Positions 13,791 through 58,989 of a DNA stretch of 64,000 nt are shown here, piece after piece. The position numbers and the translations under genes were made by a program. The notes below the pieces were generated by a model. It did no database searches, was not told the origin of the DNA, and was given only the letters and a program-made list of their open reading frames with translations. Location of the stretch: positions 23,870,001-23,934,000 of the forward strand of contig JANJGN010000026.1 in the NCBI GenBank assembly GCA_026770705.1. The letters are read 5' to 3'. Origin of the DNA: Isurus oxyrinchus (Eukaryota). The number at the start of each line of letters is the position of its first letter. The first letter of the stretch is position 1.

Positions 13791-14462
13791 TGAAGATTCT
13801 TAGGAGGCATTTTCGAGAAGGAAATTGAGTCCGACTCTTCAGTTTCAGGGATGGGAGTTAAGAAGAAAGCTAAAAAATATGTTTTCAAACGATCTGGAAA
13901 AGGGGATGTAAGTGGTGATATTTCAGAAACCTATTGCAAATTAAATGAAGTGGAAATAATTCATACATCATGGTGTCTTAAATTAAGCAGCAGGAAAAAG
14001 TCAAGTGGACATAGTTTCAAGTTGCTGAAAGGTAATTTTAGGGTTGATATCAGGGTATTGTTTATGGAGAGAGCAACTGAGATTTGGAATACCATCAGAT
14101 TTTAATTTAATAGTACAGGAAATTACAGAGAGTCATAATCGATTTTCATTGTTAACTCCCGTGTCAAGTACAGAGGATGTAGATGTACTTCTTGACTCTT
14201 GTCTTCCCAATGCACTCTGAGATTTTAATATAACTGCTGTCATTTAAACTTTTTTCTGGATAGGTTTGATCGATTATAAACGCAATTTATAATTACAATT
14301 TAATATAATTTCAGGAGTGGGCCTCATCCCTCGTTAATGAGTGCTCTGCTGCGTTGCAATTTTAAGGAAATCCCTGTGAACCTCAGTGGAGGCTGTATTA
14401 CTGTTTCCGTTTATTGGTGTGAGAGCGCCCTCTGGTGAGCACTAATTGGGATTTTCTGTCTG

Positions 14463-14800
14463 GGTCTCTCTCCAGGATACGTGATAACGCTGCATCAGTT
14501 TGGTCTCCATGGCATAGAAATCCAGGACAGTGTGGCAGATCAGGGTGTGACTGATCTTCAATTCAGTATTCTTGGTAATTTCGTTAACATAGAACGGAAT
14601 AGATCAGTGAGTGACGTGTAGGTTCCTGCCGACATCCCACCAGATAAGATGAATGATGTATTGTGGAGGCTGGCCTTGTTGTTCGGTACACCAGTTCACG
14701 TAGGGCAAGAAACGTTTGTCCTCCGACGTGACTTTTGGAAAAGACCATCTTGGTTATAGCAGACACATGGGGAATGGAATTTTACTGCAAAAATAAAGCA
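14463..14800 (-). pseudogene. TCR V pseudogene, paralog of the V at 43738-44236
   Basis: PYVNWCTEQQGQPPQYIIHL..; ends FYAME; RSS remnant CAAACTG-24bp-AGAGAGACC; CTCF motif at about 14424-14439; leader region occupied by a retroelement 3' end at 14800-14920. Confidence 0.8.
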
Positions 14801-22025: not shown

Positions 22026-23029
22026 TGGACCAAGTGGGCAAACCGCACCGCTGTGTTTCGAGCATCGGCCTTTCGGGTGGTGCTTTTACAAAAACCCAGG
22101 GTAGGGGCTATGCAAGCAAAACAAAAAATAAAATCTGGAAATGAAATACTTAAAGATAGTCAGAAACGAAGAGAGTTGGAAACAAAGGAGAGGAAAAAAG
22201 CTAAAATTATCGCACAATCCAGAATGAGTGGGAGAAAAACAGAAAGCGAAAAGGTGCATAATAATCGGTGAAGAGGACAGAAAATTAGGAAACAATCGAA
22301 AGATAAGAAAAAGCAAGTAAAAATTAACGAGTGTGATGCATAGAGGTAAAGATCAGATAAAATAATTGTTGAAGAGTAGCTTATATAAAGTAAAATACCT
22401 TTCCTTTAACTTCGCTCATATTTCCTTGATAGTTGCACATTTGAATTTTTTGAAGTACGTTCCTGAAGAAGTAGTTGTTGGAAATTGTCCCATAGATAAA
22501 TTTTCATTCTGCTCATTTTTCTAATGGTGTAATATTCTTAGATTTCCCACCAGAAGGCGCAGTGGTTACATGTTCCTCGCTGTTATCAATTAGAGCGGCA
22601 GAACTGGCGGAAACACTGCCAGCTGCAATCCCGCCAACAACTTCCGTTTGCAATTACTCTCACCAGCACTTGAAGATGCCGGTTTAATCTTAACAAAGGG
22701 GTAATAGCAGTAAATATGCAGCGTTTGGTCTCGTCCTGCACCGCAGTGTTTATGTAATATTCTGGGATTTGAGGCAGGAAGAGAAAACATTGAAACACTT
22801 GCAAATAACGGAAAATGGCACCTGAAATAACAAAGTCCTTTTTGTCCCGTCTCCCCAGCCCCCGCTGAATGTCGGCACCAACCTGTTACATTTTCTGAAT
22901 TATATTTAGCCTAATGAACAATAACAGACCACTAATCTGTTGAGCTATAGCCTGGGAAAACGGTGCGCTCGCTAAATTTTGCATTAGTAGAATTGTCACT
23001 TTCATCATACCGAATGAAAACGCCCCAAT

Positions 23030-29465: not shown

Positions 29466-30967
29466 TCCCCGGAGCTGAGTTGAATATCGAGCCCTGAGTT
29501 TAAGGTAAATAACAGCTGATAAGAAGCAGGAAGGACGGTTTAACCTGTAGATTCATTTGTTGATTGATCCATCGGACGGATCTGAATCTGTAGTTGCTTT
29601 CTTGGTAGCTGTTGGAAACAGTTGGGTGACAGGTTGATCCGTGGTCAATGTGAATTCCTCTCGGTTTGTGTTTGAGCGGCTGATAGCGCCGCTGAACATT
29701 GTGGCTACACCTGCCCGAGTTCCAATACAAACTCCAACAGGCAAGAGCTCCTAGACACAGCCCAAATTACGGAGATGAGACTGATTTTCATCATAAACTC
29801 CGGCAGAGTCCTGCTTCTGACCAACTCTCCCGAGTCCACTTTCTCCGCTCAAAGACAGAGGTGGGACTGCCGGAACGGTGTTGTTGCTATGTTTTTGCCT
29901 CACCGATTGCTTGAAATCATGTGTAAGGTTGTCCCTGAGAATACAACCCGTTCGGAACCAGCCAGTGCCAGAATAAAACGCAATTCACCCCATGTAATAT
30001 AATAGGCGGTACGTAAAGCAGTCACTTTTCTTCCGTTTAAGCATTTATGGACAGTAGCTGAATGATAAAATTTCCATGACTCAGATCTGAAATGCATGCG
30101 CACACAGGAAGTTCCCTAAATGCAGGGTGTTTGAAATTCGGATTGAAACCTTGATTCGGAAATGAGACGAATGGTGTTTATTGCATAATTACCTGTCCGA
30201 AATGCCTCACCCCTTCCGTTTCCCCTCCACCACCCGCCCCACCACCCCCCCCCCCCCCCGCACCCCCACGCAACCCCATTTCAACCCAGATGCTGGGTGG
30301 ATGCATTATCTCTGTCTGCCCTGTAAATGGAAATTGAGATTTCAAGAAACTCGTTTTAATCTGCATCATCAAGTATCTTCTGAGGTGTCTCAGGATCATC
30401 TCACCTCAATTCCTTGTGTCCCCAGTGATGCTTCAAGAACTGTAGGTGGGAACCGGCTGCCAGTGAATGGAAACAACTCGAACTGAGCTATAGACAGTGA
30501 CCCTATAAGAGGAACGGTTATGTAGTTAGGGATAGGGGTGGGACTGGATTCCTTACTAAAAGGCAGAAGCACTGGTTTGTTAATGGTGTCAGAAAAAATT
30601 TAACAGGCACTCGAAAGGAGAATGGACATTGAGGGAACTGTGTGCTCGGGACTTGTTTAAAAGAGTGAAATCACAACCTGGTGAAATACCTTCATTTTCT
30701 ATAAATTGTTTCTGAACCAGCGAAATACCCTGATCAAATGGACACCATGTAGAAGCTTTGACAAAGGGACCTAGAAGGAAAGAGTGAAGATGGGGAAAGG
30801 GCTATATCAGAGTTCAGACAGGCAAGAAAGGTCATCGACAGGCTAAATATGAGTTAACGTATTGCAAATTTATTTGTGGAATTCATTTTTAGTATAGTTG
30901 CAAGTCAAAGTCAACCATTATAATTCCTCAGTTGCTGCTCACCCGTTCTTCTTCAGCGTTGTTCTTG

Positions 30968-34361: not shown

Positions 34362-35466
34362 TGGCTCCGGTGTTGCTCACACGTGACTTACTCTTCAACA
34401 TGCATGAACCTGGCGCCCTCTGCTGGCGGAATCTGTTCGATTCGGATTCGAATTGGACCTTTGGTTGGATGTCGGATTTATTGGTATACATATTGAAGCA
34501 GGCATGTCAGATATTATTTCCCAGGAATTTAAATTGGAGCTGATCAGACTCATGCTTTTTTAAAATGTTTATGGTAGAGAATAATGCAATTCTTTCTATA
34601 TTACTGTTTAAAAATCAGAGAAACACTATTTAGATAGGATGACAAGATATTAGATATTAGACATTAGAAGAAATACACGAGGCAGGTACCAAGTGTGGCG
34701 GCCTTAAATGTAAACAGACAAGGAAAACTGGCGTTATTATTTTATCAAAGAATTTAAAGGAGATACTTAATTGAAACGCTCTAAAAGATATGAGATCTGA
34801 TGTAATAAATCACGGAAGATTGCACCCAGTGGCAGAAAATTCGATAACCCATACACCCCATTTTCAGAGATGAAAAGATATGACAAAGGTGAAATTCAAT
34901 TATTACACCGTGTTAAAATCTGAAATGCACGACCCAAAGGATGGAAGAAGAACATTCAATCGTAACCTTCAAATAGAAATTGTTTGTAAGTTGAAAATCA
35001 GAAAACTTGCCCCTCATGCGAAAATTGCAAGAATTGAAGGTGATTTTGATAACTCTTCCAAACACACACCGGGATGGTATGGCAAATAGTCTAATTCAGT
35101 GGATTACAATTCTATAATTCAAGATTCTTCATGCCTCTTCTGCTCTATTTGTTCTCTGTCACTTGAACCGTGAGCAGGTGCAGGATTGTCACAAACTTGT
35201 GAAGTTGCAACCGTCATTATTTCTGCTCCCTCAGTTCCGGGTGCAACTGAGAGTCACATACACTTTACTAAATATTGAATCGGTGGTATCCACGCCCACA
35301 GCTTCCGTTTGCTGCTCTCACTCTGACGCGATTGTGTTACTGGAGTGATTGCTGCCGCTGGTCTCTTCTTCTCATTGTTTGGGTCAGCAGTGCAGTGGGA
35401 TGGGGGTTTATATTTCTGCTTTGACAGAGGATTTTTTGCACGGTAGTTACAGACTCAGGACCTATC

Positions 35467-36022
35467 AGGGGGAACAATTTCAGGCCGCTCATCATTGTTA
35501 TATCATTTCTCAGTAAGCATCTCCTTCCCGGTAAAATCCACTGTCCTCCTGACTGCTCTGATGCAGATGTTATTGTTGTTAAAATAATAGGGATAGCCGT
35601 GATGATGATTATGTTCATCAACATGAAACTGATGCTGATAATTGTTTTTACTTATCTTTAATGTTAGAATGGGACCACCAGGACACAGTAGAACAGCCGG
35701 TTCAAGAAACAATGGATGAAGAGGAAATTAATCCTGCACAAACTTGTATTTTGAAAGCAAGCATTCGCAGATTTTATATGTACTGGCATAATGAGCATCC
35801 CAGGCAGAATCCAGAGTGTGCGCTTCATCATATTGGAGATAATGTGTACGGGAGCACCAATATCATTGATCGGTTTTCTTCTACGCTTAATAAAACTGCC
35901 AAGATCGCATTTCTAACGATCGGCAACTCACTGAATTCGAACTCCACCGTGTACTTCTGAGAGTCTTCTGTGCCATGAGCCCAACACTGCTACAGAGAGA
36001 TAGCGAATCCAAGACAAAAACT
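35467..36022 (+). pseudogene. TCR V pseudogene, inverted paralog of 43738-44236
   Basis: Start ATG changed to AGG (35467); donor 35513; exon from 35668 DTVEQP..C..YMYW..STVYF* (35958-35960, caused by a short insertion); RSS AACACTG-24bp-ACAAAAACT. Confidence 0.92.
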
Positions 36023-37037
36023 CACATAGTTTTTCAATTAGCGCTCAGCAGAGGGCGCTCTCACACCCACAAAAAAGAAGGAATCATTCAACTTTGAATT
36101 TGAGGTCACGCGGACCTTTTTAAAAGATCATAAAACATGTAACATTCAACAAGAACAGCTGAATAGATTAGTTTGCCTTTAAAATTTGAATTTATAACAA
36201 AAACTATCTTTGTAAATGGCAATGTAATGCATCAATCCCGCTTATCTTTTTCGACGCATTTCCCTGCTGACTTGTTTCTTATCATCCCGTCTCCATTCGG
36301 TAAAAAATATGTGCAGTTTCTTCTCTCAGTCTTTAATTTATGGAGATTGTCCTTTGCTACTTCTCTGAGTATTAATTCACAACCACTCCAATCCGGATGC
36401 CTGTAGATTCAGCCCTGGATTCAAGAACGGTTATTCATGAAACTTTTGCCTATTATTGAATAATATAATAATCTTGATACTCCTGTCTCGAACCTACTCG
36501 TCCCCAGTATGGAATGGATATGAAAGTTCCGCAACCCTTCTCGAGAGACAGCGTTATATATTTTTCGAAGGGGACATTACTACTGGATTCATTTCTTTGC
36601 AGATGAATCCGAAGCTATGATATCACTGCCTGCTATAAACCCGCCCATATCAGCGTCCACTGCAGTCGTCAGTATGACGCTCCTTTCTTGCCCTTTATTA
36701 TTGGAGAGTTTGCTGCCTTTGTTCTCTGTTTGTAATTGATTGGATGTGGGCGGCCCCGTGTTAGCTCAGAGACAATGTGAGCCGATGTCACTGTGAAGTA
36801 GTGAATGTAGGTGGCCAGAACATGTGTTCAGAGACTGTGAACCGGTGTTCGTGTGAATCCTGAGGCGGTAAACCCCAAAGCTCGTCTTCTTTCGTCAGTT
36901 CGCCAGAAAGGCTCCACTGAGTTTGATCTGAAGCAGGTGCTTCTCTTCTTGTTAAACCTTCTGAATATAATATCCATTTCCTGGTTCGAACCTGATTGCC
37001 ATGGACAATTTCTTCAGACAGTATTTCATGTGATCTG

Positions 37038-37412: not shown

Positions 37413-38124
37413 TGCACAACATGGGAACTCTGCTCTATCGTGTTTCCATGATCGGCTTGTGAGTGATGTGGTATAAATAATACCAGGGCCGTGTGTATGT
37501 GTGTGTGTGTCGGGGGTGAGGTGTAGCTTGAGTGGCGCTGAGCGAAAAAGCAAGAAAATATAATATATAAAGGTTTATAGATGATCAGAAATGCAAGGTG
37601 TTCGAAACACAGACGCAGAGAAAGGAAGAGCAAACACTCAAGCCAGAATGAGTGAACAGCAAAGGCAAGGTGAATAGGTACAGGAATCATTAGTGAAAAG
37701 GTCCTAAAATGACATAAGCATGAAAAAATAAATGAAAGAAAGTGGAGAATAACGAGCGAGTACAGAGTTTAAAGATTAAATGAAGTCATAAACGTGAAGA
37801 ATCCCAAATAAAGTAGAATTCCTTTTCTTTTAACGACAATCATATTTTCTTGCTAGTTGCAAAGCTGAATTTTCTGAAAATGTTGTCTAAAAACTTGTCA
37901 TTGAATGCTGCCACACGGATACATTTGCACTTTTCTCTTTGTTCTAATGGTGAAATATTCTAAAGGATTCCGCTAGGGGGCGCCGTGATTACATGTTATC
38001 GACTGGGCACTCAAGAGACAGAACTGACTGTTACCCTGCACAAGCAGCCCTTCCCATAGGTTTCCTTCGCTTTTATTCGTTTTGACCCTCATTGCCTGCT
38101 CTGCGGTAGTGGGTACATTTAATG

Positions 38125-41406: not shown

Positions 41407-41883
41407 ATGTGCTCCCCATGTTCCTTACTGATCATAATGGTCTTGCTTCCTGGTGATTCTATGTCTACATAGTCAGTGTGTTTACAGCGGTTATATTTCC
41501 TCCCTGACTTTTGAAACATTCTGCATTTGTGTAACAGGAACAAGTGGCGTGGATTCAATGTCCCAGGATCCGTCTGGATTAATGATTCTGGAAGGACAGA
41601 GCATAACACCAGACTTCAGTTACTCGACAACCGACCCTGCCCCAACTCTTTCCTGGTACATCCAACATCCCTGCGAAGCTCCGAGATAGTTACTGAAAAT
41701 GTAAAGCTGGGAGATGAAGAAAGGTCTCCAAACTTAACAGAAAGGTCCTCTGCTGATTTACACAAAGGAAACAAAACTGTTCATTTAAATGTCTCAGGGA
41801 GTCTTTTCCCTGACAGCGCCGTGTATTTCTGTGCCATGGATCCCAAACTGCTGCAGAGATATAGCGGTTCCGGTGCAAAAACC
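41407..41883 (+). pseudogene. TCR V pseudogene, inverted paralog of 49985-50419
   Basis: Leader MCSPCSLLIIMVLLP G|GT (41407-41452); exon from 41538; first Cys changed to Phe; stop at 41687-41689 plus frameshift; RSS CAAACTG-24bp-GCAAAAACC. Confidence 0.95.
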
Positions 41884-42799
41884 CCACTGTGAGTTCCAGT
41901 TTGTGCTCAGCAGAGGGCGCTCGCACACCGCTAAACAGAATCAATAAAGCAGCCTCAACAGTGAGGGTCACAGGGACCTTCCTAAAAGATCCAAGAAGGA
42001 CACCAAACGTTAGCCGAATTATATTAGCTGATTTCAAATCGAACTTGTATCACCATCGATTTTCATAAATCTATTGGATTACTTTCATTTACTTGTTGCC
42101 TTTTGATGCAGTTTCTGTGCCTGTCTGTAATATTAAACAACTCTTTCCCCATCTCCCCTGTCGGTTTCCTCGACACTTTGTCTGCAGCCTGTTCACATGG
42201 TTTATTTGATCAGAGTGTGTTGCTGGGTCGGAGACAGTTTATATACAATAAGCACATCTCATCATGCAGTGATTGTGATCTCCAAAACAAACTTCAGGTA
42301 AAAAGTTCACTCATTGACCACTGAGCTTCAGAATGCTGGAAGATTTTCTGTCACCATTAAAAACCCCGAGTTTGCTGGTGATAATGAACTGACGAAGATT
42401 TATTTCCCACCACACCCGTCTCTAAAAGTACAGCTTTTCCTCTATCTGACTGTAGTCCGGCTTGGGGTGTTTCAGTGTCATTCAGCTCACCACCGAAGGA
42501 TGTCACAGGCCCATGGAGACACAAGGAAGTGAGATGAAAGCTACCTGAGACATAGCAACACACTATTGAGGGTGGGGATTAGAACAGGTACCTCCAAATC
42601 TGATTCTGTGATGATCTGCCAGTCAAATGGATTCTGCAGTTTGTTCTCTTGGCCGCTCCTGCAAATTGTTTGATTCGAGGTTAATGTGGTTTCCTCTCGG
42701 GTTCTGTCTGAGTGGCTGACAGTGCCGCTGAACATTGTTGCTGTAGCTGCCTGAGATTCGATACAACCCTCAACCGACAGGGATTCCCAGAATGGAGTG

Positions 42800-43070: not shown

Positions 43071-43656
43071 CAGGCAGTGTTATCACACATCGGACCTTTT
43101 TGTAAGGAGCTGAAGTCAGAATAGTGATAATATCCTGTTCGAAAATGATGTAACTTTGCCTCTCTCTAAGAGCTGCTGTACGTTCACATTCATTCCATAC
43201 TGGGGGAGGGATGAACACAGGCGTTTCAAAATTAGTAAATTATTCCGTAATAAAGGGAATCTTCCTTTGCAACCTCGAATAAAACTGAGCCTGAATCTAT
43301 GGACTGCTGGGTTAGTCTGAGTTAATTTACAACAAGTATCAATGACCTGAAACGTGTAAAGCGAAACTGGAAGAAGAGAATGTCTGAAATTATTGGTAAC
43401 GGGTGGAGACAGAGGCTGAGAAAGAAAAGGTCGACAGAGAAAGGCATCCAAGGAAAAGAAAGGTGAGTTAAAGCACCATAGATCGATTCATGATTATCAT
43501 TTTTCTTAGATGTGTGAGTTGAAATCGCACGTTGATATTACTGCTAAAGTGCTCATTGTCGGATCTTGTAGGGGGTTGTGTTTTGTAGCAATTTTACGAA
43601 GGTCCCTGTGACTCTCACTGTGGATGTGAGATTATTGCTTCTGTTTATCTGTGTGA

Positions 43657-43675
43657 GAGCGCCTTCTGCTGAGCA
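43657..43675 (-). promoter_or_regulatory. RSS-adjacent CTCF-like motif
   Basis: ctcagcagaaggcgc, 24 bp 3' of the nonamer; paralogous motifs near 14424, 36044, 41906 and 49908. Confidence 0.7.
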
Positions 43676-43697
43676 TTAACTGGAACTCTCAGTGTTG

Positions 43698-43737
43698 GGT
43701 TTTTGTACGGGATCCGCTATATCTCTGCAGCAGTGTG
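43698..43737 (-). other. RSS with 24-bp spacer
   Basis: CACACTG-ctgcagagatatagcggatcccgt-ACAAAAACC. Confidence 0.93.
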
Positions 43738-44236
43738 GGTTGCATGGCACAGAAATATACCGCACTGTCAGAGATCAGGGCTTTGCAGATCATTAGCTCG
43801 GTGACCTTGGCTGTTTTATTCAGCATAGCTGAAAAGCGATCGGGGATGCTGGTGTGTCTGAATAGATTCCATCCCAGGATATGAAGCATGTACTGTGGAG
43901 GCTGCCCGGGATGCTGACTGTACCAGTACACATAAGGGTCAGAATCGCTTGTTTTCAAGGTGCAATTTAGGGTGACATTTCTTTTTTCTTCTGCAGTTAT
44001 TTCAGCAACCGGTTGTTCCACTGTCTCTGGGTGGCTCCATTCTAACATAAAATATAATAAAAACAATAATTAGCATCAGCATCATATTAATCAATACAAT
44101 CATCATCATCACCATTTTCTTACCAACAGTAACATCTGGGTTACAGCTGTCAGGAGGAGAATGGAGTTTTACTGGGAAGGGAATACTTACTGAGAAGTGA
44201 TATAATCATGAGGAGCGGAGCGAGACGGTTCTCCAT
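43738..44236 (-). CDS. TCR alpha/delta V segment, apparently intact (exons 44236-44191 and 44041-43738)
   Basis: MENRLAPLLMIISLL-K-WSHPETVEQP..LNCTL..YWYSQHPGQPP..SDSAVYFCAMQP; phase-1 GT-AG intron. Confidence 0.95.
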
Positions 44237-45193
44237 GATGCTTCCTGGGCCTGTAACTCTGCAATGCGAGAAATACTCTGTCGGAGCAGAAATACAGATC
44301 TCAGTCTCACAGCATTGCTCAAACAACCAATGACAGGAATGGACCAGCGGCAGCAATCTCTCCAATAACACAATCGGGTCAGAGCGAGAGCAGCAAACAA
44401 AGCTGTGGGCGGCAATACCGCAGACTCAATATTGAGTGAAGTTGCGGTGACTCTCAGCTGCACCAGGAACTGGTGGAGCGGAAAAGCGACGGTTGAATCT
44501 GCAGAAGCCTCTGACTATCCTGCACCTGTTCACTGTTCAACTGGCTGAGAACATATAAGATGGGAGGAACAGGAAGGGCTTAGAATCATAGAGGAAGAGC
44601 TGAAGCCATTCGGCCAATCATGTCTAGGCCTCATTGAAAGAGTGATCCAATTCATCTTTCACACCCGCATTTTCCACATAGCCAGATATTTTGCAGTGGT
44701 TCCAGCTCTGAACACATGGTCGTGTAATAATTGAATATGATCTTTCCCTATCTTTTTTGCTCTCAAAATGGTGGCATTGGATTTTCGAAGTTTCTACTAA
44801 TGGAAACATCTATCCGCTATCTATTACATCAAACGTCTTATCACTTTCAATATTTCAATTAAATGTCCCCTTTAATAATTTGGCAGAAGAAAACTAATAT
44901 CAGATTCTCTAGCCTGCTCACATTGAAGGCCGTCACCCCAGGTGTCATCTCAGTCAACATTCTCCAATATCTTGACATTCGTGTAAATCGTGTTTCTTCG
45001 GTGGCTAATCAGTGATTTGCAAAGGATTTTCATTACTTCCCGCCATAAAAATCAACAAAAATAAGGGCGCAGCCTGATTAAATCCAATTTAGATTCATGG
45101 GAAAACATATCTGACATTGGTGTTTTGTTATGTGAATCAGTCAACCCGAAATGCACTCGATGGCACCAATTCTCAACCGGTTTGAACAGAATC

Positions 45194-45212
45194 CACCAGC
45201 AGAGGGCGCCAA
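45194..45212 (+). promoter_or_regulatory. CTCF motif between divergent V genes
   Basis: ccagcagagggcgcca, near-consensus; also at 57153-57168 (+) and about 34412-34427 (-). Confidence 0.8.
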
Positions 45213-45274: not shown

Positions 45275-45558
45275 TCTCAGAGTAAGGAGTCGCCAATTTA
45301 AGACAGAGGTGAAGAGGAATTTATTCTCTCAGAGGATGGTGAATCTGTGGAATTCTTTACCTCAGAGGCCTGTACAGGCTGGGTCCTTAAGAATATTCAG
45401 GCTGAGATAGACAGATTTTTAATCAATAGGGGAATCAAGGGTTATGGGGAAAAGGCAGGAAAGTGGGGTTGCAGATTATCAGATCAGCCATGACCACATT
45501 GAAAGTCGAAGCAGACTCAATGCGCCGAATGGCCTATTTCTGCTCTTATGGCTTTATG
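45275..45558 (+). mobile_element. CR1-like LINE 3' end inserted in a V promoter
   Basis: Typical CR1 tail; the flanks join up in the paralog at 57230-57245. Confidence 0.88.
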
Positions 45559-47865: not shown

Positions 47866-49944
47866 AACTAAAATTGCAATTGAGCGTCATACAAGATAAG
47901 ACAATAAAGCAAAGTCTAGCAGGAGATAACGGATCTGATCAGTGAAATAATGCTGTCAGAAATAGAGATCACCCTCATGCTTTGGAACGAGTAAGATGTC
48001 CAGGAATATAATCACTAAAATGAAGCTTAGATTTATGTGTAGGATGTTATCGACTTGTATAAAATAACTGTCTGAACATTCAAGCCAAGAGAGGGACATG
48101 GTGAAAGCATCGCTGTTCTGTATCAAACTGAGACCAACACCAGTTACATTTTGTCCAGAGGACTCGGCTCTCTGGGACTTGTGATTACAAAGTGAAACTT
48201 TGTGGGCGCTTCAACATTGATGGGGTGTCGGGGAGCGGGTTGTTCATGCGTCAGAGTATCCGCTCGTGTGGCGTAATTATGCGGCCTGTGTGACATCACC
48301 TTGTAAACTTTGTGGCGTCATCCGACAGTTTGTGAGATGTCAGACAGTCTGCTTTGAGGATCATAAGCATCATCCCGGGAACTGACCTGAATATCAAAAC
48401 CTGAGTTTAAAAGAAATAAAAGCTGATCAGAAACAGGAAAGACGGTTTAACCTGTAGATTCATTTGGTAATTGACCTGATGGTCGGATCGGATTCTGCAG
48501 TTTGTTTTCTCGGCCGCTGTTGGAAACAATTGTTGACAGTTTGATCCGAGGTGAATGTGGTTTCCTCTCGGTTTGTGTTTGAGCGGCTGACAGCCCCGCT
48601 GAACATTGTGACTGCACCTGCCCGAGATTCAATACAAACCCAATAGACAGGACCTGCCAGACACAGCCCAGAGTACGGGAGTGAGACTGTTTTCATTCAT
48701 AAACTCCGGCTGTGAGTCCTCCTTCTGACCAACTCTCCCGAATCCACTTTCCCCCCTCAGAGAGAGAAAGGTACGACTGCCTGAATGGTGCTGTTTTTTT
48801 TTTTGCCTCACCAGTTGCCTGAAAACATGAGTATGTAAATACAGCCCGAACGGGAACAGCCAGTACTAGAATAAAACACAGTTCACCCCATGTAATATCA
48901 TAGATCGTACTTAAAGCAGCCACTTCTCTTCCCTCGAAGCAATTGAGGACTGTAGCTGAGTGAGAAAATCTCCATGATTCAGATCTGAAATGCATGTGCA
49001 AACAGGAAATTACCTGACTGGAGGGTGTTTAAAATTCGAATTGAAACCTTGATTTGTTCTATTATTAGCTGCCAAAATGCCTCACTCCTACACCCCCCTC
49101 ACACCACCACCACTGCCCACCCCCCAACCACCCCACCATTTCAAACCAAATGCTGGGTGGCTGCAATGTCGCTGTCCGCTCTGTAAAATGGAAATTGAGA
49201 TTAGAAGAAACTCGTTTTAATCTGCACCATCAAATATCTTCTGATGTGCTTCAGGATCCTTTCACCTCATTTCCTTGTGACCCAGTGGTGCTTTCAGACC
49301 TGTAGCTGGGAACCGGCTGTCAGTGAATGGCAACAACCCGAGCTGGACTATAGTCAGTGCCCTTATAAGAGGAATGGCTACATGGTTAGGGACAGGGGTG
49401 GGGATGGATCTCCTGGTCTAGTTATTACAATTCAGAAGCACTAGTTTGTTAATGTCGTCAGAAAAAGTTTGACACTCAAAAGCAGAATGAACATTGCGGG
49501 AACTCTGTGCACGTGCCTTGTTTTAAAGGGTGAAAACACAACCTGATGAAACCTAGTCTTCATTTTTTATACACTGTTTCTGAACCAGCAAAACATTCTG
49601 ATCAAATTGACACTATGTGCAGGCTTTGACAAAAAGGGCCTAGAAGGAGGGAGTGGAGACGCGGAAAGGGCTGCAGAATAGTTCAGGCAGGCAAGGAAAG
49701 ATCATCAAAAGGCTAAATGCGAGTTAAAGCAATACAAATGTATCTGTGGAATGAAATTTTGCTACAGTTACAAGTTAAAGTCAGCTAAAATAATTCCTCA
49801 GTTGTTGCTCGCCCGTTCTTGTGCAGCTTTATGTTTGTTTTGATATTTTATTCAAGACTCTGTGACCCTCACAGGCTGAGTTATTGCTTCTGTTTATCGA
49901 TGTGAGAACGCCCTCTTCTGAACACTAACGGGAACTCCCCGTGG

Positions 49945-49984
49945 GTTTTTTGTACGGCATCTGCTATATCTTTGCAGCACCGTG
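49945..49984 (-). other. RSS with 24-bp spacer
   Basis: CACGGTG-ctgcaaagatatagcagatgccgt-ACAAAAAAC. Confidence 0.9.
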
Positions 49985-50419
49985 GGCTCCATGGCACAGA
50001 AATACACGGCGCTGTCGGAGAGAAGGGCCCCGGCGATATTTAAAGGAACCATTTTGTTTCCTTTGTGCAAATCAGCAGAGAACCTGTCTGGGAAATCAGG
50101 AGACTTATCTACTTTCCCCGAGGTATATATCCTCATTAAATATCTCGGAGCTTCCCTGGGATACTGGATGTACCAGAACAGAGTTGGGGCAACAGCTGCC
50201 GTGTAATTACAGTCCAGTTTTATGTTCTGTCCTTCCAGAACCTTTAATTCAGGGGGATCCTGGGTCACCGAATCTTTACCATTAGTTCCTGCAACAAAAC
50301 ACAGAATGTATCAAATATCTGGGAGTGAAGATAACACACGTAACAGACACTGGCAATTTAAACATTAACTCACCAGGCAGCAAGACCATTATTAGCAGTA
50401 GGGAACACAGGGAGCACAT
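49985..50419 (-). CDS. TCR alpha/delta V segment, apparently intact (exons 50419-50374 and 50288-49985)
   Basis: MCSLCSLLLIMVLLP-G-TNGKDSVTQDP..LDCNY..FWYIQYP..SDSAVYFCAMEP. Confidence 0.96.
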
Positions 50420-53179: not shown

Positions 53180-53602
53180 ATGGAATTACAACTTCTGATT
53201 TTGATTTTAGGTGAGGACTTTGTGGAGAACCGTGTTCGCCATTAGAACATGTTTCTTCTCTTTTGTATCAGCAATTATCTCAACAGATAGACTGTGATCC
53301 ACCAGTCACAGCGGATCTTTGCACAAGAGGGACAATCGATTGAAATACAGTAAAATGCAATCACCAGAGGCTCTGAGAGTATTCACCAGTACAGAATCGT
53401 GGCCCGAAATTTATCATATCAGCTGTTAGTAGAAACACCACAGGCAGACTCTTCAACCTATTCATTTAACCAACAAGAAGCTACAACATTCCCGGTAGGG
53501 GCAGCACCATAGGATTAGAACCTATGGTGTATTAGTCTGGGGTGTATTACTGTGCAGTGAGGCACTGAGAGATAATACAACCATTCCAAGCTGACAACAT
53601 TC
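53180..53602 (+). pseudogene. TCR V pseudogene
   Basis: Leader MELQLLILIL G|GTGAGG (53180-53210); acceptor 53270-53271; ..AQEGQSIEIQ*..GPKFIISA..SGVYYCAVR; heptamer CACTGAG, nonamer degenerate. Confidence 0.85.
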
Positions 53603-53934
53603 ACAGCGGCCTCTGCTCTCCTCAATGTGTTCTTTGTGAACTACCGGTCCAAAGAGGCAATCCATTCTGCAGGACAGGGTTAATAGGGTCGGTTGAAGCC
53701 TGTTACTGTTTCACTGTTATCGTTTCTTCTTCATATTGTTAACCATCAGCTCTTGATGGTTGGGTCGGAAATGATAAACCAAATTAAACTCATCACCTTG
53801 ATGTTGAGGCAAGTCTGAGCTGGCAACAATATTTTGGTTCAGTTGCAGGCGGAGATCAATGAATCAGAACAGCAGAGGAGGGGCCCAAAAAAACACCATT
53901 CTACAGAGGAGGAGTCCATCAATACACTATCGAG

Positions 53935-56620: not shown

Positions 56621-57363
56621 CATCCTGCTCATTCTCACTTTTCAAGGGGCTGCGAACAAATAGTGCGGGAGGGGACTGACGGCACCAGAAGCATTGAAAT
56701 CCGTGCAATGGAGTGAGGTTTCGGTTTACCGTACCTGAGCCTATTTGAAAGAGCTAGGCTAATCATCTTTCACCTCTCTCATTTTTGCTCCCCCACCCCC
56801 TCCACCCCCCACCTACCGCACCAAACCCCACCCTCCCCTCCACCCCCTCCACCACGTTTGTAATTCCTTGAAGGAATTTACCAATGAATCTCCTTCCCGC
56901 TATAGTTTAGCACCGTATTCCTGACAGGAAAGCATCGCAATGTAACAAATAAAATTTATCTTTCCCTGCCAATATTCTTCTACGAAATCGGGATGATTTC
57001 GCTATTGAATCTTCGGGTAATGGAAACGATCCAAACAGCTCCAGTTTAAATTTCACATAAACGTTGCGTGAAATAAGTGTCCAAATATGGATTTCACTTA
57101 ACCCTGATCACACTGAATTGTCGCTTTCTCAACCCGACTGAAAAAAAACCCACCAGCAGAGGGCGCCACCCCTAAGCATGGTCATGGCACGGTCACGGCA
57201 GCGTCAAAGCCAATAGGGGTGGCAGCCTGAGTGAGGTCACAATGGGCCTGGCCCCCTGCAGTGTGTGGGTGGAACAATGAGTTGAACAGAGCCCGGGTTC
57301 CCCCTCGCCTTCTCAACCTCTGGTTCACCTTATTCCCATTTACTGAGAGAGATTCTGTCAGAT

Positions 57364-57930: not shown

Positions 57931-58989
57931 TCAGCGAGCATTTACAGCTCTGATAAGCTTTCTTTCGTGCCTTTGTCGGCAGGGAAGGTTCGATCCCGAG
58001 TTCACAGCAGGCAAAAGCCGGCAGGCTAGTTTATCGCACAGTTATATTACGGTTGTTGCCCTTGTCCAAATCAACAGACGGGTAACTTGGGAAATCTTGG
58101 GTCTTATCACCATTCTGTTTTTTTTCTGCTCAATATAAACAGGGAATGTTGATGTGCCGGCAGAGATGATTAAAGCTCAAGGATTGGAGTTCCTATAGCT
58201 GAAAATTACCCTGAAAGAGATCCACATTGAGAATTCCAATTAGTTCTGACAGCGGTAAAGAGGAACAGCACAAGTGATTGAACCTCCAGACCGCGAGTCA
58301 CTGGGTCCTTGCTAAAGAGGCAACAGGACAAATCGCTTAACGTAAACACACGAGGTGCATCAGCACAAATATTTTACCTGACATTTTCAACTTCCGTTTC
58401 CAGCACAAATCAACTTCGCGAATTCATCAGTGACACCCGAGCTCATCTCGTCTCCATCGATTCCCGTTGTAGCCTTGATAGTTTCATCTTTTCCCCTGAC
58501 CAAACACTTTATCTACAATCCTATACACTCCCTCATTCTAGTCTTTAATGTAACGATGCAAACCTATTCTTTCTGATCTGAATATCAGACAAGTGCCGTT
58601 ACGACAGAGCTTCCTTAAAGGGGAACTGCAGACAGACGATTGAACACAGAGACAATTTTTCACACCCTGCCCACCACATCTGATCATTGCTCAGAACAGG
58701 CAGTGGAGAGCAGCCGATATGAATATTTCTTCTTTGGATCAGGCCCTGGGCAATAAATAAAATGTTATTTCACCGGCAATTGTCTCTGAATTGAATTTTC
58801 TCTGAATTATCTCAAATACATCGGACAACAATCATCACATGGATGTCTTTATCATATATAACGCATTTCGTCCAATAATACGTAATGGTAGCTGAGCATT
58901 AGGCAGCTGAACACCGAATGTGAAAGATAGAGAACAGTAAATGTTGTAAACGGAAGACACACACTGATAACTGACATCACAGAAAAAAA

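Follow-up and report, generated by a model that had tools for sequence, protein, structure and literature searches.

In a 64,000-nt stretch of Isurus oxyrinchus DNA (assembly GCA_026770705.1, contig JANJGN010000026.1, positions 23,870,001 to 23,934,000 of the forward strand; hereafter the window, in which all positions are given), five V segments of a probable T-cell receptor (TCR) array, V14, V35, V41, V43 and V49, were found to carry a recombination signal sequence (RSS) with a 24-nt spacer, followed closely by a sequence resembling a CTCF site. Both features lie in one ~190-bp 3' module. The explanation that is given slightly better than even chances here is that spacer and site occur together by descent, that the site is probably bound by CTCF and under selection, and that the 24-nt spacer is tolerated.

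RSS spacer lengths

On the best reading of heptamer and nonamer, with the register set by homology, the gap between the two is 24 nt in V14, V35, V41, V43 and V49, in agreement with what a sequence-only reading of the window had claimed for these five. Most other RSSs have 23 nt, as that reading had also held (V18, V21, V27, V37, V57 and V60, together with the V54 remnant). The five RSSs, with the parts of that of V43, are:

14463-14502 (-): V14 RSS; CAAACTG, 24 nt, AGAGAGACC, nonamer decayed
35983-36022 (+): V35 RSS; AACACTG, 24 nt, ACAAAAACT
41844-41883 (+): V41 RSS; CAAACTG, 24 nt, GCAAAAACC
43698-43737 (-): V43 RSS; CACACTG, 24 nt, ACAAAAACC
43731..43737 (-): V43 heptamer, CACACTG
43707..43730 (-): V43 24-nt spacer, the same as the consensus of the sequence-only reading
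43698..43706 (-): V43 nonamer, ACAAAAACC
49945-49984 (-): V49 RSS; CACGGTG, 24 nt, ACAAAAAAC

The spacer register is fixed because the 23-nt and 24-nt families alike end the spacer in GT, followed by ACA(A/G)AAAC. A 23-nt reading, with the nonamer moved to TACAAAAAC or the heptamer to CACTGCT, was rejected as giving poorer matches than the 24-nt reading, and is also excluded by homology with the 23-nt families (GT then ACAAAAACC). An A-rich nonamer within 23 plus or minus 1 nt of the heptamer was found in all five (at 24 nt), that of V14 being decayed, and the essential heptamer CAC, directly at the coding end, is kept by V43 and V49 only. V27 and V60, with 23-nt spacers, have exactly the heptamer and nonamer of V43, spacer length alone being different. 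Functional V segments with 24-bp spacers are known to be in use in humans (PMC2212390).

Two of the five, V43 and V49, are intact genes, and here too the sequence-only reading was borne out. In each, a leader exon with a GT donor is separated by an intron from an open V exon, which is preceded by an AG acceptor, encodes Cys23, Trp41 and Cys104 and leads into the RSS; the intact V segments are V-set domains (Pfam PF07686). The remaining three (V14, V35 and V41) are pseudogenes with dead heptamers, the lesions being frameshifts in V41 and an 11-nt insertion and a stop in framework region 3 (FR3) in V35. The exons of the intact genes are:

43738..44045 (-): V43 V exon, intact (Cys23, Trp41, Cys104; ends CAMQP), Pfam V-set E 2.2e-12
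44192..44236 (-): V43 leader exon (MENRLAPLLMIISLL), GTAAGT donor
49985..50292 (-): V49 V exon, intact, Pfam V-set E 1.5e-13
50372-50419 (-): V49 leader exon

Two RSS-like strings, at 29663-29703 (-) and 48570-48610 (-), were rejected as V segments, there being no V coding sequence upstream. They are mutually paralogous (CACAATG, 25 nt, ACACAAACC) and are probably not recombination signals. A V remnant outside the module family (YYCAVR; 53563-53605 (+)) reads as CACTGAG, 24 nt and ACAACATTC; a weak CTCF-like string on the other strand just behind it, GAGCAGAGGCCGC, falls below the threshold of the position weight matrix (PWM).

A shared 3' module in two V families

The region around each of the five RSSs was found to be homologous. 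The module comprises the last ~44 nt of FR3 (DSAVYFCAM), the 24-nt RSS, the CTCF-like site ~22 nt past the nonamer and ~80 nt more. When scored by nhmmer with a profile built from the five copies, it was located as follows:

14334..14561 (-): V14 module copy, nhmmer E 7.6e-62
35913..36152 (+): V35 module copy, nhmmer E 3.7e-56
41785..42012 (+): V41 module copy, nhmmer E 1.9e-70
43566..43796 (-): V43 module copy, nhmmer E 9e-68
49819..50043 (-): V49 module copy, nhmmer E 1e-65

Pairwise blastn separates the five V segments into two families, namely family A, with V35, V43 and, more distantly, V14 (alignable from ~-840 to +145 relative to the heptamer), and family B, with V41 and V49 (~-630 to +405). 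Between families, blastn homology is limited to -44..+145, with 80-84% identity there as against 72-73% whole-unit identity within families. Global alignment gave a cross-family identity of 0.63-0.81 in the module and of 0.47-0.51 in the leader, intron and V body and in both the 5' and the distal 3' flank, the shuffled baseline being 0.47. On its sequence, the module is of single origin and was then either moved between families or held unusually constant. Non-motif positions of the module are likewise common to both families, and gene conversion or unequal recombination is therefore favoured.

The modules of V41 and V43, which lie tail-to-tail 1.7 kb apart, are the most alike of the five (81%), and form a ~185-bp inverted repeat of 81-84% identity. 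An orphan, decayed module copy was also observed at 58209-58336 (+), ~280 bp behind the V57 RSS (nhmmer E 5.5e-9). It extends from the nonamer side through the distal flank, is without a V segment and has lost the CTCF core. A second conserved block in the module flank, at +105..+135 (e.g., 41985-42010 (+) and 43570-43600 (-)), has the sequence GTGAGGGTCACAGGGACCTTCnTAAAA and holds an imperfect inverted repeat of nuclear-receptor-like half-sites (GGGTCA cag GGACCT).

The CTCF-like core and its conservation

A CTCF-like 15-mer on the V strand, pointing downstream of the V segment, was identified in all five copies. Mismatches were counted against the consensus of the sequence-only reading, CTCAGCAGAGGGCGC, and bit scores are approximate, as is the matrix used (JASPAR MA0139.1). 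The cores are:

14425..14439 (-): V14 CTCF-like core, CTCACCAGAGGGCGC; 1 mismatch, 18.1 bits, 23 nt from the nonamer
36044..36058 (+): V35 CTCF-like core, exact CTCAGCAGAGGGCGC; 0 mismatches, 17.2 bits, 21 nt from the nonamer; flank 26% off consensus
41906..41920 (+): V41 CTCF-like core, exact CTCAGCAGAGGGCGC; 0 mismatches, 17.5 bits, 22 nt from the nonamer
43659..43673 (-): V43 CTCF-like core, CTCAGCAGAAGGCGC; 1 mismatch, 13.9 bits, 24 nt from the nonamer
49908..49922 (-): V49 degraded CTCF-like core, TTCAGAAGAGGGCGT; 3 mismatches, 12.1 bits, 22 nt from the nonamer

Motif and strand are thus as first described, with the distance from the nonamer extending over 21-24 nt instead of the 22-24 bp that had been claimed. 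When compared with the CTCF core consensus CCASYAGRKGGCRS, V14, V35 and V41 have 0-1 mismatch and V49 is weak. No CTCF-like match was found within 110 nt of the nonamer in the 23-nt V segments V18, V21, V27, V37, V57 and V60. The core was not found to be associated with functional genes, as the three pseudogenes score best and the two intact genes are the weakest. The cores at 41906-41920 (+) and 43659-43673 (-), belonging to the tail-to-tail pair V41 and V43, are convergent.

A partial CTCF upstream motif was also seen in the window copies:

43682..43687 (-): AGTTCC, partial CTCF upstream motif (CTGCAGTTCC-like), 9 nt before the TCA of the V43 core

V41, V43 and V49 have AGTTCC, which V14 and V35 have lost, and the window copies match 6-7/10 upstream positions. 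In the published CTCF consensus, a CTGCAGTTCC-like upstream motif is separated from the core by 2-7 nt and a TGG-like triplet (PMC12885311).

The core was found to coincide with the least variable part of the module. In the non-coding module, the 12 least variable of 134 sliding windows of 15 columns all overlap the CTCF core and the neighbouring TCTCAC, and variable columns number 5/15 in the core against 78/124 in the flank (Fisher, 0.048). The V35 core has 0/15 changes at a flank rate of 26% (binomial, 0.011), the V14 core 1/15 at 23% and the V49 core 3/15 at 15%. The sole CpG retained in all five module copies is that of the core. Identity between V43 and V35 has its maximum (0.85) at +60..+89, with flanking troughs of 0.55 and 0.3-0.4.

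Paralogous copies in DNA contigs

Read evidence consists of the DNA contigs of runs X1, X2, X4 and X8; two small runs of 2025 are low-depth DNA. A search of sequencing runs turned up no RNA run containing the stretch, and no V-J junctions were found in the DNA contigs compared. In X1 the depth of unique flanks is ~25 and that of the RSS spacer, when summed, ~1,086, which suggests tens of near copies in the genome, a rough figure as contig depths are sums. Most of the summed depth over the V43 spacer is without an indel. A 2-nt spacer deletion occurs in one contig only (depth 141), with zero such contigs in X8 (organism label B). Spacer indels being nearly absent, 24 nt is taken as the stable spacing of a family with many copies, seen under two organism labels.

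Contigs of X1 and X8 that share the V43 RSS and diverge just past the nonamer read TCACTG, GCAGTTCC, 6 variable nt, TGC and TCACCAG. The paralogue-contig consensus GCAGTTCC, found under two organism labels, fits the published CTGCAGTTCC-like upstream motif. A conserved upstream motif and core around a variable linker is what would be predicted for a bipartite CTCF site.

The module was also considered as a transposable element, which was rejected: its read depth follows that of the V body, not that of the high-copy repeat at 45299-45400, and it was therefore taken as V-family flank. That repeat is very high-copy, with a summed contig depth of ~86,700 in X1 and ~71,700 in X8, where unique sequence has ~25 and ~5, respectively.

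CTCF-like sites elsewhere in the window

The mammalian CTCF matrix marks oriented boundaries of topologically associating domains in skate (PMC10115646), and its application in cartilaginous fish is therefore reasonable. Searches with the IUPAC consensus gave 15 CTCF-like motifs in the window against 0.61 expected, and the approximate PWM at >=14 bits gave 15 against 1.0 expected, a ~15-fold enrichment. The 15-mer at <=3 mismatches occurs 11 times against 0.78 expected in the 64-kb window; the five RSS-adjacent copies are homologous and count as one origin, not five, in this estimate of chance.

Three homologous strong CTCF-like sites of 23.5-24.5 bits keep a perfect 16-nt core within flanks that are ~65% identical:

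34411-34429 (-): strong CTCF-like site
45193-45211 (+): strong CTCF-like site
57150-57168 (+): strong CTCF-like site

Two of these lie antisense to the family A segments V35 and V43, at ~1.5 kb upstream, and the third is 450 bp upstream of V57 in sense orientation. The paralogous V21 and V37, both with 23-nt spacers, share a CTCF-like site ~520-555 bp behind the RSS (22544-22562 (+) and 37967-37985 (+), respectively), the two differing mainly at degenerate motif positions. CTCF-site position in the window is V-family-specific, as in mouse Igh.

Origin and possible function of the module

In the explanation favoured here, the module would have spread by duplication inside the two V families and also passed from one to the other, with gene conversion or unequal recombination as the most likely route. 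Spacer and CTCF-like site would then occur together by descent, without demonstrated functional coupling. The CTCF-like element would probably be a genuine CTCF-binding site that is selectively kept. By analogy with the mouse VH81X and Q52 elements, CTCF bound there would stall cohesin right beside the RSS, and the stalled cohesin would keep the V array, at this point, in contact with either the recombination centre or other anchors. The 24-nt spacer would be a family trait tolerated by RAG, inside the known range of 23 plus or minus 1. A shark RAG that accepts 24-nt spacers well, as the sequence-only reading had also considered, would fit the contigs, which suggest tens of copies that keep 24 nt under two organism labels. 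Judging from the motif, CTCF probably does bind the candidate site. That bound CTCF promotes use of the adjacent V, as the mouse elements would suggest, is conceivable if somewhat doubtful, and that it mainly anchors or partitions the array, also by analogy, is rather unlikely.

Several observations weigh against this explanation. The site is defined by motif only, and all five cores have T where C strongly dominates (the core opens with TCA, not CCA). In the intact genes, the V49 core has lost 3 positions at about the neutral rate and the V43 core is altered at one constrained position. Identity between V41 and V49 is uniform across the module with no distinct peak at the core, and the conservation statistics are those of five related copies, for a motif that was chosen after being seen. 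Slow evolution of the entire module could mimic gene conversion. V segments and sites are on both strands and point both chromosomal ways, which is a misfit with simple one-directional scanning, since only some of the sites would be convergent with a single recombination centre.

The association in the window is perfect, with a site on 5/5 of the 24-nt RSSs and 0/6 of the 23-nt RSSs, and the sequence-only reading had taken it to mean that a suboptimal 24-nt RSS and a CTCF site form a unit which tunes V usage. In such an explanation, the longer spacer makes the RSS suboptimal, the adjacent site compensates or tunes usage, and the pair is selected as a functional unit; it can also draw on the mouse, where an RSS-adjacent CTCF element boosts the usage of its VH gene (PMC7930373). 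However, the association exists because one ~190-bp module was inherited in five copies, which is one evolutionary event and not an independently replicated one. Given that single origin, the association therefore gives no support for functional coupling, which should not be read from copies of one origin. Core scores are lowest in the intact genes and highest in the pseudogenes, the opposite of the pattern expected from a usage-tuning device. V43 shares its heptamer and nonamer with the 23-nt V27 and V60, and human 24-bp spacers are used with no such partner reported (PMC2212390). The multi-copy contig with a spacer shorter by 2 nt aligns to the module flank and, if real, would mean that the site is not bound to 24 nt. 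The compensating unit is considered very unlikely. What stands of the comparison with a mouse-like usage element is the position directly behind the RSS on the V strand, the mouse-type arrangement and the conservation peak, the compensation for a 24-nt RSS being unsupported.

Alternatively, the CTCF-like sequence may be a chance feature of the ancestral flank that was copied with the RSS, is unbound and has no function. Homology alone accounts for its presence in all copies, the decay of the V49 core (3/15) is at about the flank rate of 15%, V41 and V49 are uniformly identical over the module, and the orphan remnant at 58209-58336 lost the core. However, conservation in the module is highest at the core, which survives in V14 and V35 despite an RSS and flanks that are 23-26% diverged, the core CpG is kept in 5/5 copies, the paralogue contigs keep upstream motif and core with a linker that varies, and the ~15-fold enrichment in the window includes other conserved sites; a passenger without function is regarded as unlikely. 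A third explanation accepts binding and gives the sites a purely architectural role, with CTCF-bound loop anchors or insulators (e.g., the convergent 41906(+) and 43659(-)) partitioning the V array without effect on the adjacent RSS. The best cores adjoin dead V segments, sites face both chromosomal directions in an array with V on both strands, other conserved sites are located upstream of V35, V43 and V57 and ~520-555 bp downstream of V21 and V37, and the density of ~1 site per 4 kb is similar to or above that of mammalian V arrays (PMC5859386). A generic anchor would not need the fixed distance of 21-24 nt from the nonamer that all copies and the paralogue contigs have, however, and a site in the same position in mouse does affect usage of the adjacent V (PMC7930373); this explanation is judged quite improbable.

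In a wider form, the explanation by descent with a selected site would make RSS-proximal CTCF elements a gnathostome device, either old or evolved more than once, with a role in the TCR loci of cartilaginous fish as well. The RSS and CTCF site would then be a cassette convertible between V families, so that tens of V segments retain a matched signal and anchor, with selection on the site outlasting the death of the V. This extension is put forward as speculative and is more likely wrong than right.

The V array and its locus

The 64-kb window contains no N runs and has ~16 V-type segments or fragments on both strands:

~8.2, 10.7, 14.5, 18.4, 27.0, 31.0, 40.0 (weak match), 43.7, 46.3 and 50.0 kb (-): minus-strand V segments or fragments
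~21.7, 35.7, 37.1, 41.6, 57.6 and 60.1 kb (+): plus-strand V segments or fragments
~53.5 and 54.2 kb (+): two extra V remnants, detectable solely via FR3 ends and RSS

With fragments and remnants included, the two strands carry ~10 V (minus) and ~8 V (plus), interleaved. With V on both strands, many would need inversional rearrangement if the assembly is correct. A protein homology search returned 2 matches only, the nearest named one being a Callorhinchus milii Ig-like domain protein at 45% identity. This match indicates that the clade is chondrichthyan and does not fix the locus. Judging from the multi-V array, the 23-type RSSs and the CAM/CAL/CAV endings, the array is probably a TCR locus, with alpha/delta as the probable type.

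A metagenome scan for related loci returned only one locus (L001:663-960, contig MDSO01027172.1), an unrelated fish-like V at 29% identity. It has a CAAS ending, a canonical CACAGTG, 23 nt and ACTAAAACC, and is probably host or environmental DNA contamination. No CTCF-like motif was found in the 60 nt available there.

Comparison with known systems

The choice of V in mouse Igh is explained by loop extrusion together with RSS-adjacent CTCF elements. For mouse Igh, CTCF sites that are specific to V families and no more than 100 bp from the RSS are listed in 7183, Q52, S107 and others, two CTCF sites near an RSS are listed for mouse Tcrb, and those of mouse Tcra/Tcrd are mostly upstream of V promoters (PMC5859386 Table 2). 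The shark arrangement resembles the mouse proximal VH elements (7183/VH81X, Q52, S107) in having, on the V sense strand, a CTCF-like core within tens of bp 3' of the RSS, the mouse motif orientation being taken from the convergence of VH sites with the 3' CTCF-binding elements (PMC7930373), and in a site position that is V-family-specific and copied with the V unit (PMC5859386, PMC7930373). Unlike mouse Igh, the shark array is TCR-type, has V and sites on both strands, and has sites known here by motif. Among mouse proximal VH genes, functional ones carry the site and pseudogenes are reported without it (PMC7930373), whereas in the shark the pseudogenes keep the best sites.

Human V segments with 24-bp spacers are like V43 and V49 in being intact V with a consensus-like heptamer and nonamer and one extra spacer base (PMC2212390). 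Those human variants are sporadic; the shark 24 nt, known here from genomic DNA, is in contrast the fixed state of a multi-copy V-flank module. In bipartite CTCF sites, the upstream motif is contacted via zinc fingers (ZF) 9-11 and the core via ZF3-7; the shark candidate for the upstream motif, AGTTCC or, in the paralogue contigs, GCAGTTCC, lies 9 nt before the core, inside the reported linker range. Unlike typical bipartite sites, the window copies match 6-7/10 upstream positions, the motif is lost in V14 and V35, and the core has TCA, not CCA. A further parallel would be gene conversion or unequal crossing-over that homogenises the 3' ends of V genes within arrays, the shark mosaic having a 3' 190 bp that is common to families otherwise at the random baseline; the shark material for this is five copies of 190 bp, and strong constraint on the module is the alternative.

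No paper on CTCF sites at shark RSSs was found in the literature searched. As judged by motif, the shark case would extend RSS-adjacent CTCF-like elements to another locus type and a distant lineage, with a cassette that is common to V families. A site at a fixed 21-24 nt from the nonamer makes the question of an ancient as opposed to a mammal-only origin of such elements testable in the oldest living V(D)J lineage.

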